Position numbers and translations under genes: made by a program
Shown: piece by piece, positions 1,534 through 62,086 of the stretch
How the letters are laid out: each line of letters opens with the position of its first letter
How positions within the stretch are numbered: the first letter of the stretch is position 1
Notes under the pieces: model-generated
Told to the model about the DNA's origin: nothing
Databases searched by the model: none
What the model saw: only the letters and a program-made list of their open reading frames with translations
Virus record (IMG/VR): IMGVR_UViG_3300035698_029839
Span: 62,001 to 126,000 of that record
Reading direction: 5' to 3' (one strand)
Length of the DNA stretch: 64,000 bases

Positions 1534-2088
1534 TACGAGAGTTAATAAATTATATGTTACAGATAAAAAAGAAATTAGATTTAGTTCTAATAGTAAAAAT
1601 AAAAAAATAGAGTTTCTAGTCAAAGAAGCACTTATTGGTTATGCAGGTGTGATTGTGGAAAGGAATTATGGGTTAGGTCGGATGTGTTAGCAAAAAGAAA
1701 AAGTTGTGGTTGTGATAAACGTGCTGGAGAACTTGGAGATGGAGTAATGGGGGCTGTTTATGCTAGTTATAAAGGAAATGCCAAAAGAAGAAGTATTGAG
1801 TTTGATATATCTAAAGAATTTTTTAAAGAGATAACTAGTAAACTTTGTTATTATTGTGGCTCTCTTCCAAGTAATTATAGGTGTATAAAAAATTATTATG
1901 GAGATTTTAAATATAATGGTATTGATAGAATAGATAATAATATTGGTTATGAAAAAAGTAATTGTGTTCCGTGTTGTAAAAAATGCAATAGAGCGAAGGA
2001 TATAATGTCTAAAGATGAATTTGTAAGTTGGGTTAAAAATATATATAATAATTTGAAAAATAATGGAGTTTTAAATGAAGATAACTGA
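1508..2088 (+). pseudogene. HNH-type endonuclease split by a frameshift at an A7 tract (1601-1607)
   Basis: N-terminus MGRVKDISNTRVNKLYV is in one frame. The -1 frame after 1603 reads NRVSSQRSTYWLCRCDCGKELWVRSDVLAKRKSCGC and continues into CYYCG...GIDRIDNNIGY...NCVPCCKKCNRAK. Joined product is 193 aa. Confidence 0.8.
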
Positions 2089-5573: not shown

Positions 5574-6272
5574 ATGTCTAAGATTAAAGGCAAAGCAAGA
5601 GCAAACGCTAATAGAAAAAAGAAAAATAAACAAAAAAATGATTTTTTCTTAAGACGGAAATCTCTCATAAAAGAAATTAGGAAATATGATGATCCCGCAT
5701 TAGTATATAAGTGCGAGGTAGTTTCTGAGAGCGATAGTGATATAAAAAATATCTTTAAGAAAATGAAACAAGTTCTTAATGTTACTGATAATGGAGTTGG
5801 TTTGGCTGCTTCTCAAATCGGAGTACTTAAAACAATGGTTATTATAAAGCCAGATTCTAATTCCGCTAGCATAACGTGCATGATTAATCCTGAGATAGTT
5901 TCTCATTCAGAAGAAATGAAATTTGGACGCGAGGGATGTCTTTCTTATCCAGAAACATTTGCTTTTATAGAGAGATTTACTTCGATTAAAATTTCTTATT
6001 TTGATGAAGAGTGGAAGAATCATGTTGTAGAATATAAAGAGGGTGATATTCTTGGGATTGTTGTTCAGCACGAATTAGAGCATCTTAGCTTCGGCCATTG
6101 CCAGGTTTATGGGTGGTGGAAAGATCCAGAAGGTAAGAAAAAAGAGTTAGAAGAAAGAATGAAAAAGAAAGAAGAAACTCAAGAATCATCTTCAAGTTAT
6201 GCGATAGAAGAATCTGAAGATAGAAAAAGAGAAAAAGAAGAGGAGGAGAAAAAAGAGAAAAAGAATGATTAA
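5574..6272 (+). CDS. def: Peptide deformylase with basic N-terminal and charged C-terminal extensions
   Basis: GVGLAASQIG, EGCLS and QHELEHL motifs; SD AGGAG upstream. Confidence 0.92.
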   Translation: MSKIKGKARANANRKKKNKQKNDFFLRRKSLIKEIRKYDDPALVYKCEVVSESDSDIKNIFKKMKQVLNVTDNGVGLAASQIGVLKTMVIIKPDSNSASITCMINPEIVSHSEEMKFGREGCLSYPETFAFIERFTSIKISYFDEEWKNHVVEYKEGDILGIVVQHELEHLSFGHCQVYGWWKDPEGKKKELEERMKKKEETQESSSSYAIEESEDRKREKEEEEKKEKKND

Positions 6273-7816: not shown

Positions 7817-8804
7817 AAAATGTAGGGTTTGTGGAGAGGAGAAGTTCTTGGATGATTTTTATTTTCGTAAGGACAGTGGGACGTATAGAGGAGATTGTAA
7901 AAAGTGCAATCTATCGGGAAGAAAAAAGTATAAGAAAAAATATAGAGAAGAGAATAGAGAAAAAATAAAAGAACAAAACAAGAAGTATAAAGAGAATCTC
8001 AGTGAAGAAAAAAAATTAAAACGAAAAGATTATTTAAAGACATATCAAGAAGAAAATAAAGAAAAAAGAAAAAAATATGCTAAAGGATATCGATCAGGAA
8101 ATAAGGAAAAAGTTAGAGAAGGGCAGAAAAGATATAGAGAAGAGAATAAAGAGAAAGTTGAAGAATGCAATAAAAAATATTATAATAATAACAGAGAAAA
8201 GATACTAGAAAAGAACAAAGAATATTATCAAAATAATAAAGAAAAATTTGCAGCTAATGATAAAAAGTGGAGAGAAAATAATAAAGAAAAAATGAAAGAA
8301 ATTTATAGGGTATACGAAGAAACCAATAAAGAAGAAATAGCAGAAAGAAAAAAAGAATATTATAAAAATAATAAAGATGTAATAGATAAAAGAAATAAAG
8401 AATATAGCAAGACTCCAGAAGGAATAAGACAACGCAGGGAGAGAGATAATAAGAGAAGGGAATGTCTTATGTTTAGGTTGAACGGGAATATGTCTAGTGG
8501 AATAAGGATTTCTTTAGAAAGAGATAATTTAAGTAAAAATGGTAGGCACTGGGAATATATAGTCGGATATACCACTAAAGAATTGAAATCTCATATAGAA
8601 AAATTATTTACTAAAGGTATGAATTGGGAAAATTATGGAGAGTGGCATATAGATCATATTACGCCAAAATCATTTTTTAAATATAAATCTACAGATGATG
8701 TAGAGTTCCGTTATTGTTGGTCTCTAAATAATTTGCAGCCTTTGTGGGCGGCAGATAATATAAGAAAAAGTGATAAAATTATTTTAAGGAAAATAGCAGT
8801 ATGA
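7806..8804 (+). CDS. HNH-type (endonuclease VII-like) homing endonuclease with N-terminal Zn finger and 15-aa charged repeats
   Basis: KKCRVCG...CKKC; about 10 Y.E.NKEK..E..K repeats; GMNWENYGEWHIDHITP and NLQPLWAADNIRKSDK motifs. Confidence 0.85.
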   Translation: MESKKCRVCGEEKFLDDFYFRKDSGTYRGDCKKCNLSGRKKYKKKYREENREKIKEQNKKYKENLSEEKKLKRKDYLKTYQEENKEKRKKYAKGYRSGNKEKVREGQKRYREENKEKVEECNKKYYNNNREKILEKNKEYYQNNKEKFAANDKKWRENNKEKMKEIYRVYEETNKEEIAERKKEYYKNNKDVIDKRNKEYSKTPEGIRQRRERDNKRRECLMFRLNGNMSSGIRISLERDNLSKNGRHWEYIVGYTTKELKSHIEKLFTKGMNWENYGEWHIDHITPKSFFKYKSTDDVEFRYCWSLNNLQPLWAADNIRKSDKIILRKIAV

Positions 8805-54406: not shown

Positions 54407-55480
54407 ATGAAAAAAGTTTTTGTTTCTGGATGTTATGATATTATTCATGGAGGACACATCCAGTTTTTTAAGGATGCTAAAAAATATGGAGATTTTTTAA
54501 TTGTTAATATAGCTTCTGATGAAGTTATTAAATTAGCTAAAAATAAAAGACCTTCATTACCAGTTGAGCATAGGATATCAATTTTAGAATCATTAGAAAT
54601 AGTGGATAAAGTTTATGTTAGTAGCGATGTTGATAGTGTGTTAGATTTTAAAACTAATTTTATAAATGAGAAACCTGATTTACTAGTGTTTTCTGGAGAT
54701 GAAAAAAACAAAGATATTAAGAAAGAGTTTTGTAAAGAAGTTGGATCAGAGTGTGTCCAGATAGATAAGATTAATCCTTTTAATTATGATTCATCAATTT
54801 CTACTTCTAAAATAATTAATCTGGTTAAAAGACCAAAGAAAATACCTTTAAGAGTAGATTTTGCTGGCGGTTGGTTAGATGTCCCTTCTTTATCAAGACA
54901 AAATGCTTTTATAGTTAATTGTACAATTAATAAATTTATGGATGAAGATTGTGAGTTCGATCCAGGAGCTGGTGTAGGAGGATCTGCTGCTTACTGGCTT
55001 TATAAGGGACAGAATACATTAGAAAGTGAGTTAAAGAATGGAGCTGGATGGCAAGATCCTGCTGTTATTACAGAAACAGGATTATGTGTGTGGAGGTCTG
55101 GTATGATTCCTATTTTGGAATTAAAAATAAATCCTGATTTCCTAAATAATAAAATGGCTCTTTTATATGATAGAACTCCTCATGATACTCCCTCACTAAG
55201 AGAAATAGAAAGAGATTATAAATTGATTGAAGAAGCAGGATCTAAAGCTTATGAGGCAGTTATTAACAAAAATTTATTTCTTCTTAATGATGCGGTCGAT
55301 ATATCTTATAAAGCTCAATTAAAAGAGGGAATGAATAAATTAAAATCGTATGGAGAGATGAGTAAAAAATATTGTGGTTCAGGATGGGGAGGATGTTCTT
55401 TATATGTTTTTTATAATCATGAAAGAGTTCCTGACAATATGATAAAAATACAACCATATATAAGAAATATTGACGAATAG
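54407..55480 (+). CDS. Cytidylyltransferase (TagD/RfaE-like) fused to a GHMP sugar-kinase domain
   Basis: GCYDIIHGGH and SISTSKI, then PLRVDFAGGWLD, PGAGVGGSAA, GWQD and CGSGWGG. Confidence 0.85.
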   Translation: MKKVFVSGCYDIIHGGHIQFFKDAKKYGDFLIVNIASDEVIKLAKNKRPSLPVEHRISILESLEIVDKVYVSSDVDSVLDFKTNFINEKPDLLVFSGDEKNKDIKKEFCKEVGSECVQIDKINPFNYDSSISTSKIINLVKRPKKIPLRVDFAGGWLDVPSLSRQNAFIVNCTINKFMDEDCEFDPGAGVGGSAAYWLYKGQNTLESELKNGAGWQDPAVITETGLCVWRSGMIPILELKINPDFLNNKMALLYDRTPHDTPSLREIERDYKLIEEAGSKAYEAVINKNLFLLNDAVDISYKAQLKEGMNKLKSYGEMSKKYCGSGWGGCSLYVFYNHERVPDNMIKIQPYIRNIDE

Positions 55481-55509
55481 ATTATAAGTTAAAAGATACA
55501 GGAGATAAT

Positions 55510-56328
55510 ATGACCAAAGTAGGAATTATAGGTTATGGAATTATAGGAAAAGCAGTATTAAAAATGTTTAAGGACAAAGTAGAACTTTGTGTTCATGATA
55601 TAAATATTTCTACTGATGATAAAATATATTTAAATATGGTTGGAATAGAATATTCTGATAAGGAAGAAATTAATAGTTGTGATATTGCTTTTGTTTGTGT
55701 CCCTACCCCACATAATAAGTATGATGGCTTGGATATGTCTATTGTTGAAAGTGTTATAAAAGAGTTTAATCCAGGAATGTTTGTTATATGTTCTGCTTTA
55801 CAACCTGGCACAGCAGATATTTTAATGAATAAATATGGAAAGAAAATAGTTGTACAGCCAGAATATTTTGGAGAGACAACGAATCATCCTCTTACTAATT
55901 TATCTCAAAATCCATTTATGATTTTAGGCGGTAAAAATGAAGATGTTGATGAAGTCATAAAACTTTATCAAAAAGTTTATAATGCTAATATCAGAATTAG
56001 AAAGGTGACAGCTTTAGAAGCTGAAGTGATTAAACTTTCTGAGAATAGAGCTATAGCATATAAGGTTGCTCAATGTCAAGAATTGTATGATGCTTGTAAA
56101 AATTCTAAGGTAGATTATGAAACTATTAGACAAGCTGTTTATGGGGATGACCCAAGATTTAATTTATGGTGGACTTTTGTTTATGAAGATAACAGAGGTA
56201 TGAATAGTAAGTGTATTCCTAAGGATGTTTACGGGTGGTATAGGTGGGCAGATGATTCAGGAGTTAATCCACGATTAACTGAAGCCTTATTAGATTATAA
56301 CCACAGTTTAGTAAAGAAAGATGAGTAA
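55510..56328 (+). CDS. UDP-glucose/GDP-mannose dehydrogenase family protein (short, intein-free)
   Basis: GIIGYGIIG, CVPTP and divergent catalytic GMNSKCIPKD; lacks the C-terminal UDP-binding domain. Confidence 0.82.
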   Translation: MTKVGIIGYGIIGKAVLKMFKDKVELCVHDINISTDDKIYLNMVGIEYSDKEEINSCDIAFVCVPTPHNKYDGLDMSIVESVIKEFNPGMFVICSALQPGTADILMNKYGKKIVVQPEYFGETTNHPLTNLSQNPFMILGGKNEDVDEVIKLYQKVYNANIRIRKVTALEAEVIKLSENRAIAYKVAQCQELYDACKNSKVDYETIRQAVYGDDPRFNLWWTFVYEDNRGMNSKCIPKDVYGWYRWADDSGVNPRLTEALLDYNHSLVKKDE

Positions 56329-57421
56329 TATGAAAGATACTATTGGAGTAATTGGTTGCGGTTTTGTGGGGAAGGCAGTTGTAAAAGGTTTCGAGCAATT
56401 TGCAGATGTTAAAATCTATGATACGGATGAAAAAAAATCAATACATGATTTTAAAGAAGTAGTAAATTGTGATTTTGTTTTTATATGTTTGCCTACACCA
56501 ATGATATCATCAGAAGGAGGAAGAGCTAATTTATCAATACTTGAGAAATGTATGGAAGATATTAGTAATGTAGAAAATAGAAATAAAGATTCTATTTATG
56601 TTATTAAATCGACAGTCCCAATTGGGACAACAAAAAGATTTGTATCTCAGTATAAAAATTTGCGTATAGTTCATAATCCAGAATTTCTAACTGCACGTTC
56701 TGCTATAATAGATTTTATTTGTCCTGCAAGAAATATTGTTGGTGCAGATTGGGGACGTGATGGCAAACCTGTTCAGGATTTATTAATAGATAGATTTCCA
56801 GGTACTCGTTGTATAGCTATGACATCTGAAGAATCAGAAACGGTTAAATATATGGCAAATTCTTTTTTAGCAACAAAGGTTATATTTTTCAATGAAATGA
56901 GATTGCTAGTTGATAAGAAAAATTTAGACTGGGATAGAGTCATAAGTGGAGTTATGTCAGATGGTAGGATAGGAACTTCTCATTATCAAGTACCAGGACA
57001 TGATGGGGACAGGGGTTTTGGTGGATTGTGTGTTTTACCTGATGCTAAAGTTAGTGTGAGTAGTAATTTTTGTTACTTCCCAGAATTTTTAAATGATGAA
57101 GATAGTAGCTATATGAGAAGTCATGCTTATTCTAATAGGGAAATAAGAATAGAAGATTTATATGACGAATTTAAAGATAGAAAGAAATTTCATTTTTTGT
57201 TAATACAATCTTGCAATGATAAAATAGAAGAAATTGAAGATAAATATATCAGAGATGTGACTGTTAGGGATATAGATGAAGAAATTTATTGTTTTGAAAC
57301 TTCAAATGGTTTGTTTCGTTGCACATCTAATCATTTAATGCCTGTCGAAAGACAAGGAAAAATAATTATTATTCCTGCAAAAGAAATAAAGGAAACGGAT
57401 TTGCTTTTCTCGAAAGTATAA
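56321..57421 (+). CDS. ugd: UDP-glucose 6-dehydrogenase N-extein (236 aa) plus split intein N-fragment (130 aa)
   Basis: GCGFVG, KSTVP, NPEFL, KYMANSFLATK and GFGGL, then intein block A CVLPDAKV from 57029 and block B CTSNHLMPV. Confidence 0.92.
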   Translation: MSNMKDTIGVIGCGFVGKAVVKGFEQFADVKIYDTDEKKSIHDFKEVVNCDFVFICLPTPMISSEGGRANLSILEKCMEDISNVENRNKDSIYVIKSTVPIGTTKRFVSQYKNLRIVHNPEFLTARSAIIDFICPARNIVGADWGRDGKPVQDLLIDRFPGTRCIAMTSEESETVKYMANSFLATKVIFFNEMRLLVDKKNLDWDRVISGVMSDGRIGTSHYQVPGHDGDRGFGGLCVLPDAKVSVSSNFCYFPEFLNDEDSSYMRSHAYSNREIRIEDLYDEFKDRKKFHFLLIQSCNDKIEEIEDKYIRDVTVRDIDEEIYCFETSNGLFRCTSNHLMPVERQGKIIIIPAKEIKETDLLFSKV

Positions 57422-58364
57422 TGGATAAACAGGTTTCTTAAAATACTGGATAGAAAATGTTAATAGAATATTTATCAGAAAAAATTAATACAAAAACGAA
57501 TATAAGGTTCAAATGTGATCAGTGTGGAAACTTATATATTAGGAATAATAAACCATATATAAATATGAAAAAAAGTATTTATTATGATAAGGATTATTGT
57601 TGTTTATGCTGGAGAAAAATTTTAAATAATCGTCCTGAATATAAAAAGAATATGAGTATATCTATACGGAAGATGTATGAAGATCATCCAGAGATAAGAA
57701 GTAAAATTTCTAAAACTTTGAAAAAAAATGGGGCAAATATAGGGAATAAAAATGGGATGAAACAAATTAAAGCAAGAATAAAGGCATCGATGACAAGAAA
57801 AAAAAAGTTTTTAGATCCAGTTTTTAGAAAAGCTCATTCTGATATGATTAAAAAGGCGTGGGCAGATGGTAAATTTGATGGAGTTAGAGTTGGGCAGTGT
57901 AAATGGCATGAATATAAACATTCTAATGGGAATGTTTATAAAGTTCAGGGAACATGGGAGCTAGCATTTATAAAATGGTTAGATGAAAATAATTTGAAAT
58001 TTAAATGCCATAGAGGAAGAATTCCATACAGAATTAAAGGGGAAAATAGAAATTATTATCCAGATTTTTGGGTTGATAAATGGGATGCTTTTATCGATGT
58101 AAAGTGTAGATATTTTTATGATATAAGTAAGAATAAGTTTAAAGCTATAAAAAAAAGTAATCCAAATATAAATATAAAAATTTTATTTAAAAAAGATTTA
58201 TTAAAATTAGGAGTTGTTTTGTGAAAAAAATAAAAATTAATAAAATAAAAAAAGAAAGCTATAAGGGTAAAGTTTATAATCTTGAATTAGAAACAGAAAA
58301 TTTTGATACTGATGGAGATGATTTGTTCTGGATAGAGCAGGAAACAGGAATTGTTACTCATAAT
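57029..58364 (+). mobile_element. Split intein plus free-standing endonuclease (fractured-gene element)
   Basis: IntN 57029-57421, endonuclease 57457-58224 and IntC 58221-58364, each in a different reading frame. Confidence 0.88.
57457..58224 (+). CDS. Free-standing homing endonuclease: NUMOD3-like basic region plus PD-(D/E)xK (TnsA-N-like) nuclease domain
   Basis: CDQCG...CCLC; EIRSKISKTLK; VQGTWELAFIKWLD, IPY and YYPDFWV...FIDVK motifs. Confidence 0.8.
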   Translation: MLIEYLSEKINTKTNIRFKCDQCGNLYIRNNKPYINMKKSIYYDKDYCCLCWRKILNNRPEYKKNMSISIRKMYEDHPEIRSKISKTLKKNGANIGNKNGMKQIKARIKASMTRKKKFLDPVFRKAHSDMIKKAWADGKFDGVRVGQCKWHEYKHSNGNVYKVQGTWELAFIKWLDENNLKFKCHRGRIPYRIKGENRNYYPDFWVDKWDAFIDVKCRYFYDISKNKFKAIKKSNPNINIKILFKKDLLKLGVVL

Positions 58365-58523
58365 TGCTTTAGTAAAGATATTAATTCTTTAATTGATACC
58401 ATGGAAAAGGAAGGTCTTGATCCATTGGTTTTAAAAGCAGTATGGGAACAAAATAAAAGAGTTAGAAAAAAATGGGACTGGGCCGATGAGTCTTCAGCCG
58501 TTTTAGGGGAGGAAAAGTCATGA
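58221..58523 (+). CDS. ugd: Split intein C-fragment (48 aa) plus dehydrogenase C-extein (52 aa)
   Basis: GTG start with SD AGGAG at 58209-58213; block F KVYNLELE; block G GIVTHN, then CFSKDINSL. Confidence 0.92.
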   Translation: MKKIKINKIKKESYKGKVYNLELETENFDTDGDDLFWIEQETGIVTHNCFSKDINSLIDTMEKEGLDPLVLKAVWEQNKRVRKKWDWADESSAVLGEEKS

Positions 58524-59251
58524 GTGTTGTAAGGGGGGTTATATTAGCAGGTGGACATGGGAAGAGACTTTATCCTATGACTAAGGTTATAAATAAGCAT
58601 TTATTGAATGTTTATAATAAACCCATGATTTATTACCCGATAGAGACTATGATTAATGCTGGGATTGATCAAATTATGATAGTAACAGGGGGAAATAATG
58701 CAGGTAGTTTTTTGGAGCTTATTGGGAATGGGGAAGAGTTCGGATTAAAAGAAATGCACTATTCTTATCAAAAAGGAGCAGGAGGTATAGCGGAAGCTTT
58801 ATCTTTAGCAGAGAATTTTACGGCTGGAGATAAGTTTGTAGTTATTTTAGGAGATAATATACTAGAAAAAAGTATTAAGCCTTATGTGGATAATTTTAAA
58901 TGTCAACAAGGAGGAGCAAAAATACTTTTAACTAAGTCTATGACTCCAGAACGTTTTGGGGTAGCGGAGATTGACGATAATAATAATGTTACTTGTATAG
59001 TTGAGAAGCCACGAGAACCTAAAAGTGACAGTATAGTTATTGGCGTATATATGTATGATGGAGAAGTTTTCGAAGCTATTAAACAACAACAACGTTCTGA
59101 CAGAGGAGAATTAGAGATTACTGATGTGAATAATTATTATATAGAAAAGAGTAAGCTAACAAGTGATTTTATTGATGGATGGTGGACAGACGCTGGGACT
59201 ATTCCTTCTCTATTTAAAGCCAATGCGTTACTAAAGGATAATAATGAGTAA
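58520..59251 (+). CDS. rmlA: Glucose-1-phosphate thymidylyltransferase (short form)
   Basis: ILAGGHGKRLYPMT, EKP, SDRGELEITD and WWTDAGT motifs. Confidence 0.93.
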   Translation: MSVVRGVILAGGHGKRLYPMTKVINKHLLNVYNKPMIYYPIETMINAGIDQIMIVTGGNNAGSFLELIGNGEEFGLKEMHYSYQKGAGGIAEALSLAENFTAGDKFVVILGDNILEKSIKPYVDNFKCQQGGAKILLTKSMTPERFGVAEIDDNNNVTCIVEKPREPKSDSIVIGVYMYDGEVFEAIKQQQRSDRGELEITDVNNYYIEKSKLTSDFIDGWWTDAGTIPSLFKANALLKDNNE

Positions 59252-60068
59252 TATAATTTTTGGAAACGGTTTTATAGGTAATATTTTAAATAATAAGTTA
59301 GATGATTATGAATTATCAGATTTAAACCCATTATTTTATGGAACTCTTTGTAAGGCATTAGATGTACATAAACCAGAAGTTATTATTAATTGTATTGGTA
59401 AAACAGGAAGACCCAATATAGATTGGTGCGAGAATAATAAAGAAGATACAATATTATCCAATATCGCCGTACCATCAATACTTGCATCTGAATGTTCTAA
59501 AAGAGGTATATATTTTGTCCATATGGGAAGCGGTTGTATTTATTCTGATAGGGACGGAGAGAATAATTTTTCTGAAGATGATGAACCAAATTTCTATAAA
59601 TATCAGACTTACGCAAGAACTAAAATATTAGCTGAAAAAATTGTTAAAAATGTACCCTCTTTGCAGGTGCGTATTAGAATGCCTATTTGTTCTTATCCTC
59701 ATGATAGAAATTTAATAACAAAATTATCAAAGTATGAAAAAGTAATTGATATTAAAAATTCTATGACAGTTATAGAGGATTTTTTACCTGTGTTTAAGAC
59801 ACTTGTAGATAATAGGGCTACGGGTATATATAATGTTGTGAATGAAGGGGCTATATCTGCTTATGAGATTATGAAGTTGTATGCAGAAATTGTAGATTTA
59901 TCATATAGGGTGTCTTTATTAAGTAAAGAAGAGTTAAATAGGATAACAGTTGGTGAAAGATCCAATTGTATTATTTTGTCGGAAAAGATTAAAAAATATG
60001 GAATATCTATGCCCAATATAAGAGAATCTATAGAGAAAGTTCTTTATGAATATAAGGAAAATTTATGA
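59244..60068 (+). CDS. rmlD: NRS/ER-type NDP-4-keto-6-deoxyglucose 3,5-epimerase/4-reductase (RmlD-like)
   Basis: GNGFIG, GKTGRPNIDWCE, GSGCIY, RIRMPI and RSNC motifs. Confidence 0.85.
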   Translation: MSNIIFGNGFIGNILNNKLDDYELSDLNPLFYGTLCKALDVHKPEVIINCIGKTGRPNIDWCENNKEDTILSNIAVPSILASECSKRGIYFVHMGSGCIYSDRDGENNFSEDDEPNFYKYQTYARTKILAEKIVKNVPSLQVRIRMPICSYPHDRNLITKLSKYEKVIDIKNSMTVIEDFLPVFKTLVDNRATGIYNVVNEGAISAYEIMKLYAEIVDLSYRVSLLSKEELNRITVGERSNCIILSEKIKKYGISMPNIRESIEKVLYEYKENL

Positions 60069-61829: not shown

Positions 61830-62086
61830 TGTATGGAGTAGATTTTAATAACCAATTAGCCGATTATTTGTTAGATGATAACAGAAAAATTTCTAAGGCA
61901 CATTTGAATAGCGTCTGCAAAATAGAGCAGAAGGATAAAACTTGTAGGTATATATCTTTATCAAAAATAGGATATGTGTGCATGAAGAAAAGTCCAGCCA
62001 AAGAAAAATTAGACGAAATGGTAAAAGGTGAAAATATGATTGCACGATCAGATAACTGCGAAGGACTGGGAGATATGCATGGCTAA
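61829..62086 (+). CDS. Small Cys-containing hypothetical protein
   Basis: VCKIEQ...CRYI...YVCMK...DNCEG; TAATG coupling. Confidence 0.65.
   Translation: MYGVDFNNQLADYLLDDNRKISKAHLNSVCKIEQKDKTCRYISLSKIGYVCMKKSPAKEKLDEMVKGENMIARSDNCEGLGDMHG

Follow-up and report, generated by a model that had tools for sequence, protein, structure and literature searches.

A predicted split intein and a free-standing nuclease gene within a dehydrogenase-family gene of a probable very large marine phage

Fractured genes were described by Dassa et al. (2009) as loci whose three ORFs share a strand, the endonuclease being preceded by 27-51 non-coding bases; eight enzymes of DNA synthesis and repair served as hosts, the endonucleases were GIY-YIG or Vsr-like, and the loci are the sources of the split inteins gp41-1, gp41-8, NrdJ-1 and IMPDH-1 (PMC2677866). 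Contiguous inteins are known from UDP-glucose dehydrogenase of archaea and some bacteria (the ‘udp’ allele; InBase Mja UDP-GD), including methanococci, halobacteria, Thermococcus, Dictyoglomus and others (Novikova 2016, PMC4760082; Soucy 2014, PMC4071816). Here we analyze a dehydrogenase-family gene that is found in pieces at positions 56321-58523 of a 64,000-nucleotide (nt) stretch of viral metagenome DNA, hereafter the window (IMG/VR record IMGVR_UViG_3300035698_029839, positions 62,001 to 126,000). A first-pass annotation of the same letters had seen two halves of a split intein in it. Since the open reading frame (ORF) in the middle appears to be a free-standing nuclease gene, the locus has the layout of a ‘fractured gene’ and goes beyond two mere halves. 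We estimate at roughly 0.8 the probability of this reading, namely a mini-intein placed before the catalytic Cys and split by a free-standing nuclease gene, in which the splicing, the specificity of the nuclease and the substrate are predicted.

The intein halves and their host enzyme

Three tightly packed ORFs occupy the + strand in frames 1, 0 and 2 (Table 1), and a single sequencing error is indeed insufficient to explain three different frames, as had been argued in the first-pass annotation. Its description of the borders was also confirmed: the N-extein ends GDRGFGGL and the N-intein runs from Cys237 (57029) to the stop at 57421, while a GTG-started ORF with its own Shine-Dalgarno sequence (AGGAG, 58209-13) encodes a C-intein ending VTHN and then CFSKD. 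Block B of the N-intein is T99-S-N-H102 in intein numbering (CTSNH, 57323-57334) and the C-terminal end of this half reads ...KEIKETDLLFSKV. On the other side, residues 43-49 of ORF3 are GIVTHN followed by Cys, and past GIVTHN the ORF continues CFSKDINSLIDTMEKEG..., which aligns from the catalytic Cys of a solved UDP-glucose dehydrogenase. The predicted spliced product counts 236 + 52 = 288 amino acids (aa), in agreement with the earlier arithmetic (288 aa for the joined product, 272 aa for the paralogue upstream), and has the GFGGL-CFSKD motif restored.

We aligned the window halves with four other split alleles and three contiguous alleles (alignment A2; 5 split, 3 contiguous). Although these alleles are just 35-66% identical, the intein catalytic residues were kept throughout: Cys1 and TxxH in all eight N-side sequences, HN and the +1 Cys in all eight C-side sequences, and a block F reading V[YF]N[LF].L in every sequence covering it. 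The profile made from this alignment matched solved inteins, with Mja KlbA (2jmz, 1.6e-7) and the Aes123 PolB1 split intein (1e-6) at the top, followed by Pab PolII (8e-6) and the NrdJ-1 split intein (1.4e-5); identity to solved split inteins amounted to 15-18%. An AlphaFold model was obtained for a natural contiguous relative, L176 (154 aa), which is 52% and 65% identical to the window N- and C-halves respectively. The model reached a pLDDT of 92.9 and a pTM of 0.86, and all 50 top matches in a Foldseek search against the PDB were inteins or HINT domains (best TM 0.74-0.82). The window split point falls in the turn between strands 100-105 and 108-132 of this model, a turn that is the usual site of both endonuclease insertion and natural splits.

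The insertion is in frame and its flanks are colinear with intein-free homologues (alignment A1, with the intein-free alleles P0004, P0009 and P0068 and the contiguous alleles P0006, P0020, P0029 and P0032). The joined window flanks match the intein-free allele of L161 at 76 of 96 nt with no indel, which bears out the proposal that joining the exteins restores the GGxC motif. Homologues of the C-intein ORF have an ATG start at the position of the window GTG, and their ribosome-binding site is conserved. The net charge was -8 for the N-intein and +7 for the first 16 residues of the C-intein; the acidic N-half and basic C-intein start noticed at first are thus real, and opposite charges of the halves are a pattern described for split inteins. 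A variable insert of ~25-35 residues follows block A of the N-intein (window 57068-57150); it is shared with L165 and shorter or absent in L170, L174 and L176. Taken together, the motifs, the profile matches, the HINT-fold model of L176 and the comparative allele series described below support the original proposal that the window halves are a naturally split class-1 intein, located immediately before the catalytic Cys and predicted to splice.

Selection was estimated by comparing the window with L165, for which the synonymous sites are saturated (pS 0.62-0.81) and the ratio is accordingly rough. Nonsynonymous divergence (Ka) was 0.21 and 0.20 in the N- and C-extein and 0.32 and 0.16 in the N- and C-intein respectively, with 0.25 in the nuclease gene. 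These values lie far below the saturated synonymous divergence (Ks), indicating that all five parts are under purifying selection.

As for the host enzyme, the N-extein matched Pfam PF03721 (9e-19) and PF00984 (8e-13), and its alignment with the UDP-glucose dehydrogenase of PDB entry 7kws (E 4.6e-26) reaches the GGxC motif. The C-extein aligns from its Cys to residues 277 onward of UDP-glucose dehydrogenase 2y0c, continuing the N-extein alignment, and aligns as well to the C-termini of intein-free alleles. Such agreement is well outside what chance would produce. The +1 Cys is the family catalytic Cys in GGxCxxKD. The C-terminal UDP-binding domain PF03720 was found neither in ORF1 and ORF3 nor in the paralogue, and P0004, an intein-free allele, lacks it too. 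This allele scored 162.9 with TIGR03026, below the cut-off of 189.8, with profile positions 67-298 of 413 matched, and fell far under the cut-offs of the NCBIfam equivalog models. Thus the family and the catalytic Cys of the first-pass annotation stood, but its ‘UDP-glucose dehydrogenase’ and ‘sugar-acid synthesis’ are family-level guesses; we describe the enzyme as a putative short protein of the UDP-glucose/GDP-mannose-dehydrogenase family, to which the name UDP-glucose dehydrogenase applies as a family label. The paralogue and the predicted spliced product are adjacent dehydrogenases, 24% identical and both without the UDP-binding C-terminal domain, and ~90 intein-free relatives of 280-290 aa have the same two-domain build.

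Table 1. Features of the locus in window coordinates, with parts named as interpreted here
Feature	Position	Strand	Length	Remarks
Upstream paralogue	55510..56328	+	272 aa	uninterrupted; 24% identical; same two-domain dehydrogenase family; own Cys (NSKCIPKD)
ORF1	56321-57421	+	366 aa	236-aa N-extein + 130-aa N-intein
N-extein	56321..57028	+	236 aa	residues 1-236; Rossmann NAD domain and first two thirds of central domain; ends GDRGFGGL
N-intein	57029..57421	+	130 aa	plus TAA stop (57419-57421); Cys1 = ORF1 Cys237, TGT at 57029
Non-coding spacer	57422..57456	+	35 nt	from N-intein stop to nuclease start
ORF2, free-standing nuclease gene	57457..58224	+	255 aa	own start and stop
Ribosome-binding site of ORF3	58209..58213	+		AGGAG, 7 nt upstream of GTG, inside last nuclease codons (...KLGVVL)
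ORF3	58221-58523	+	100 aa	GTG start; begins MKKIKINKIKK
C-intein	58221..58364	+	48 aa	basic N-terminus KKIKINKIKK; block F VYNLELE (58272-58292); block G GIVTHN
C-extein	58365..58523	+	52 aa	plus stop; +1 Cys = ORF3 Cys49 (TGC, 58365), start of CFSKD

The nuclease gene and the series of related alleles

In ORF2, whose TGA stop overlaps the GTG start of ORF3, an N-terminal Cys4 motif (CDQC...CCLC) and helical repeats resembling NUMOD3 precede a predicted PD-(D/E)xK domain at the C-terminus, with the residues E168, P202-D203, D214 and K216. The C-terminal 90 residues matched T7 endonuclease I at 2e-5 by sequence and at 7e-6 with a profile of 30 relatives, the PD...DxK being in register. Among these 30 nuclease relatives E168 is invariant, while P202, D203, D214 and K216 are each present in at least 90% of the sequences; neither Vsr, I-Bth0305I nor GIY-YIG was named at E<=1 in the search with their profile. 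The KLGV C-terminus is conserved across the family, several PHROGs ‘endonuclease’ families were matched by ORF2 and the Pfam domain NUMOD3 was present in one relative.

The family comprises ~120 clusters in the metagenome protein collection, none of them functionally named. At least 13 of these clusters agree exactly with an intein-bearing N-fragment in the length of their longest contig, which suggests that they sit on the same contigs. In GenBank phage records the nuclease matches just 33%-identical ‘endonuclease’ ORFs of T4-like coliphages. Six other members (P0192, P0199, P0215, P0220, P0222 and P0227) were observed on contigs of 194-305 kb that agree in length with none of the listed contigs bearing N- or C-fragments, some with a different N-terminal region, and may be free-standing or interrupt other genes.

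The relatives of ORF1 were classified from its top 120 matches among metagenome proteins. Ninety were intein-free alleles (~280-290 aa), 24 were N-fragments carrying an N-intein (326-400 aa), four were contiguous mini-intein alleles (432-478 aa) and two were partial (213-227 aa). The N-extein is 72-80% identical to the intein-free alleles, P0004 being the closest at 80%. Most of the 24 N-fragments end ...KEIK(E/D)(S/T)DxLFSK, at the same point as the window, and C-fragments formed 27 clusters.

Several arrangements of the same gene were found among these loci. Split alleles with a nuclease include L165-169, from five samples, in which N-fragment, nuclease and C-fragment measure 375, 221 and 96 aa, and L170, where the corresponding lengths are 330, 246 and 84 aa. 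L112 is split into 397 and 128 aa with a 93-aa nuclease remnant. In L172 the gene is contiguous (478 aa), and its surroundings are syntenic with those in the window (MptE-like upstream, RlaP and topoisomerase IA downstream). L174 is split without any nuclease, its intact N- and C-fragments lying 16 nt apart (6036-6051). The 16-nt spacer, ATTTAGGAGTTGATTT, has TTAGGAGTTG in common with the 3′ end of the nuclease gene (window 58207-58216), and this shared stretch may be the scar of a nuclease loss after the split, on a sequence that the ribosome-binding site also constrains.

When the tree is inferred from N-extein sequences alone, no fewer than 14 changes are required to account for the presence of the intein, at least 8 of them forced by well-supported branches. 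P0004, the nearest relative of the window, has no intein, and neither has the sister of P0003. This patchy distribution fits repeated gain by homing together with loss, and does not fit a single old event. ORF2 is presumed to be a homing endonuclease; its location inside the intein, the association of the family with split alleles and the patchy intein distribution lend indirect support to a homing role.

An exhaustive profile search of 1.84 billion representatives returned 392 proteins at E<=1e-3, the best of which have the same host architecture. Related contiguous mini-inteins were observed in three-domain UDP-glucose dehydrogenases of 573-593 aa (P0291, P0304, P0282 and P0345), and the mini-inteins of such uncultured three-domain dehydrogenases end at the same catalytic Cys (HHN/CLRKD). 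More distant intein relatives lie in an anaerobic ribonucleotide reductase (P0324) and in a prohead-protease-like protein (P0368). In GenBank phage records, blastn did not find a close relative of the locus. At the protein level the N-fragment matches UDP-glucose dehydrogenases of GenBank phages with 25-36% identity, and these matches stop at or soon after the extein/intein boundary (furthest query residue 277), leaving the N-intein unmatched.

The intein-free allele of L161, on a 393-kb contig, has an in-frame TGA (8682-8684) six codons before the catalytic Cys, as do L162-L164. This TGA, which stands between GHDGD and GFGGTCFPKD, is identical in the four assemblies; the relative P0019 has Trp in that column, and the adjoining genes look intact under the standard code. 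The allele could be a pseudogene, or the codon could be read through or locally recoded. For the catalytic Cys itself, selenocysteine or recoding was considered and rejected, the TGA being six codons earlier.

Proposed pathway and competing explanations

We propose that the starting point was a mini-intein placed in frame directly ahead of the dehydrogenase's catalytic Cys, and that a free-standing PD-(D/E)xK nuclease gene, complete with start and stop codons, would then have been inserted into the loop in which the endonuclease of an intein is usually found. The dehydrogenase gene would now be expressed as two polypeptides, N-extein with N-intein and C-intein with C-extein, and the nuclease would be a third product, probably of the same transcript. 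A scan of 55400-58800 gave fewer promoter-like sites than in shuffled sequences and no terminators, so there is no evidence for separate transcription units; nor was a significant RNA hairpin, such as has been reported before the nuclease of some fractured genes, found in the 35-nt gap (z 0.15). The acidic N-intein would associate with the C-intein, whose start is basic, to fold into a HINT domain, and trans-splicing through a Cys1 thioester, attack by the +1 Cys and cyclisation of Asn48 would release the 288-aa enzyme. As the catalytic Cys of the enzyme doubles as the +1 nucleophile, an active enzyme would be impossible without splicing. The nuclease would most likely cut the intein-free alleles of co-infecting relatives, and homing would then spread the whole cassette of N-intein, nuclease and C-intein. 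A wider proposal is more tentative, and we hold it at somewhat less than even odds: the DUF7487/T7-endonuclease-I-like protein may represent an unrecognised homing endonuclease family that mobilises the split-intein cassette among very large marine phages, and the intein, with its Asn in block F and its dozens of natural variants (split, contiguous or nuclease-free), a new, possibly orthogonal family of trans-splicing tools. That splicing might act as a checkpoint gating phage-directed glycan synthesis is speculative.

Some observations weigh against the fractured-gene reading. The block F of the C-intein, VYNLELE, has an Asn that is conserved in all eight sequences, at a position where most class-1 inteins have Asp. 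The N-intein, at 130 aa, is beyond the 88-105 aa reported for fractured genes, its length being due to the variable insert after block A. Pfam matches of ORF2 to PF05367 (Phage_endo_I; 1.5e-5, score 25.1 for a cut-off of 29.1) and to DUF7487 (1.2e-4) remain below their cut-offs. With the model of ORF2, which is good per residue and has a pTM of 0.48, Foldseek gave non-significant matches to assorted PD-(D/E)xK nucleases; the identity of the nuclease therefore rests on the sequence matches. Finally, the ORF1 stop and the 35-nt gap lie outside the identical independent contigs, and are reproduced in diverged homologous loci. This last point is what speaks for an artefact of assembly or sequencing, the true gene having one continuous intein with an in-frame endonuclease domain. 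We regard such an artefact as very improbable. Three frames and a 35-nt gap would require several errors. The nuclease/C-intein junction recurs at 100% identity in three independent contigs, each from a different sample, which cover window 57529-59377, 57870-58920 and 57849-58953; a fourth metagenome contig encodes the first 344 residues of ORF1 identically. Moreover, the end of the N-fragment, followed by a separately initiated nuclease ORF, is shared by more than 20 diverged homologues.

The Asn of block F might slow splicing, which would suit a non-covalent enzyme of two pieces held together by the intein halves with no splicing at all. The T4-like ‘genes-in-pieces’ ribonucleotide reductase split by mobE offers a parallel, and phage split genes that are functional without ligation do exist (cited in PMC3322345). 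We nevertheless consider this arrangement improbable here: Cys1, TxxH and HN serve splicing alone and are strictly conserved, and the catalytic Cys would adjoin a folded 178-aa HINT domain wedged in the active-site loop. Alternatively, the nuclease insertion could have killed both intein and enzyme, so that the halves are non-splicing relics in a decaying pseudogene and the paralogue covers the function. An intact paralogue directly upstream would allow this, and the in-frame TGA in the intein-free allele of a related genome indicates that the gene can be lost. The paralogue, however, is only 24% identical. Moreover, the catalytic residues of the intein are kept in every sequence that covers them at 35-66% allele identity, the two exteins and the two intein halves all have Ka values far under Ks, the C-intein ORF has kept both the position of its start codon and its ribosome-binding site, and the nuclease-free split allele L174 retains both halves intact. 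With this evidence, decay has little chance of being the explanation, and we retain the fractured gene with a predicted trans-splicing intein.

Genomic setting and comparison with known systems

The locus is located in a glycan-synthesis island of at least 55 kb (window 7800-62000), unusually large for a phage and almost all on the + strand, with 29% GC and a strong G-over-C skew of 0.25-0.46. The island holds many GT1/GT2/GT4 glycosyltransferases, three radical SAM enzymes, methyltransferases and nucleotide-sugar genes (RmlA, RmlB, RmlD-like, cytidylyltransferases). Phage-type genes were found at its edges, namely an HNH/EndoVII-like nuclease, phrog_1017, a peptide deformylase and an RlaP nucleotidyltransferase. 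A small HNH/endonuclease-VII-like ORF at window 1684-2088 (PHROG 6e-17) may be another mobile nuclease. No tRNA was found in a scan of the 64-kb window. Related loci occur on contigs of up to 393 kb, adjoining topoisomerase IA, ClpP, a deoxynucleotide monophosphate kinase and a phage metallopeptidase. Viral contigs contain closer relatives (up to 55% identity) than GTDB genomes do (at most 47%), making a cellular origin unlikely; the likeliest source is a very large uncultured marine phage.

In the searchable literature and GenBank phage records we found no report of a split intein in this enzyme family, of a fractured gene outside nucleic-acid metabolism, or of a T7-endonuclease-I-like (DUF7487) nuclease associated with an intein; in the literature, ‘intein’ was not found together with ‘nucleotide sugar dehydrogenase’ and DUF7487 is unmentioned. 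The first-pass claim of a new intein in a glycan enzyme is thus to be narrowed: it is the split form that is unreported, contiguous inteins being already known in UDP-glucose dehydrogenase. The locus would extend fractured genes from enzymes of DNA metabolism to a glycan-pathway enzyme and add a third nuclease type to the two described for them, and several stages of the proposed gene-breaking pathway are visible within one gene family. Its value would lie mainly in protein engineering and in the understanding of split-intein evolution. The fastest split inteins in protein engineering, gp41-1, NrdJ-1 and IMPDH-1, came from loci of this kind, and another family of them could supply an orthogonal pair for ligation as well as a natural data set on split-intein function, with more than 20 natural split variants in addition to contiguous and nuclease-free relatives.

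Compared with the closest described systems, the locus repeats the order of the fractured genes of Dassa et al.: the N-terminal host part with the N-intein, a short gap (here 35 nt), the nuclease, then the C-intein with the C-terminal host part overlapping the nuclease stop. It also shares with them the insertion in an active site, the opposite local charges of the halves and the phage/metagenome setting. A nuclease-free allele exists here (L174) as for gp41-7, and the nuclease domain is preceded by NUMOD3-type repeats, as it is in IMPDH-1. Unlike those genes, the host belongs to the sugar-nucleotide-dehydrogenase family and sits in a glycan-synthesis island instead of encoding a DNA enzyme, and the nuclease is, by its motif (E...PD...DxK), probably of the classical PD-(D/E)xK type and neither GIY-YIG nor Vsr-like. 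The nuclease core aligns with T7 endonuclease I (PDB 1m0d, 1fzr, 2pfj), PDF...(E/D)xK being conserved; the latter, however, is a 149-aa junction-resolving enzyme, whereas ORF2 adds the Cys4 motif and the NUMOD3-like repeats. Such elements fused to a nuclease domain are the usual build of a sequence-specific homing nuclease.

The ‘udp’ allele has its intein in the same enzyme family, but the published examples are contiguous, interrupt full three-domain enzymes and come from archaea and a few thermophilic bacteria. Similarly to the DnaE split inteins (Ssp and Npu), the intein described here is of class 1, has Cys both at position 1 and at +1, and pairs an acidic N-half with a basic C-half; the Npu and Ssp DnaE structures were among the fold matches of L176 (TM about 0.72). 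The DnaE halves, in contrast, lie far apart in the genome, with no nuclease between them, and in a different host enzyme.

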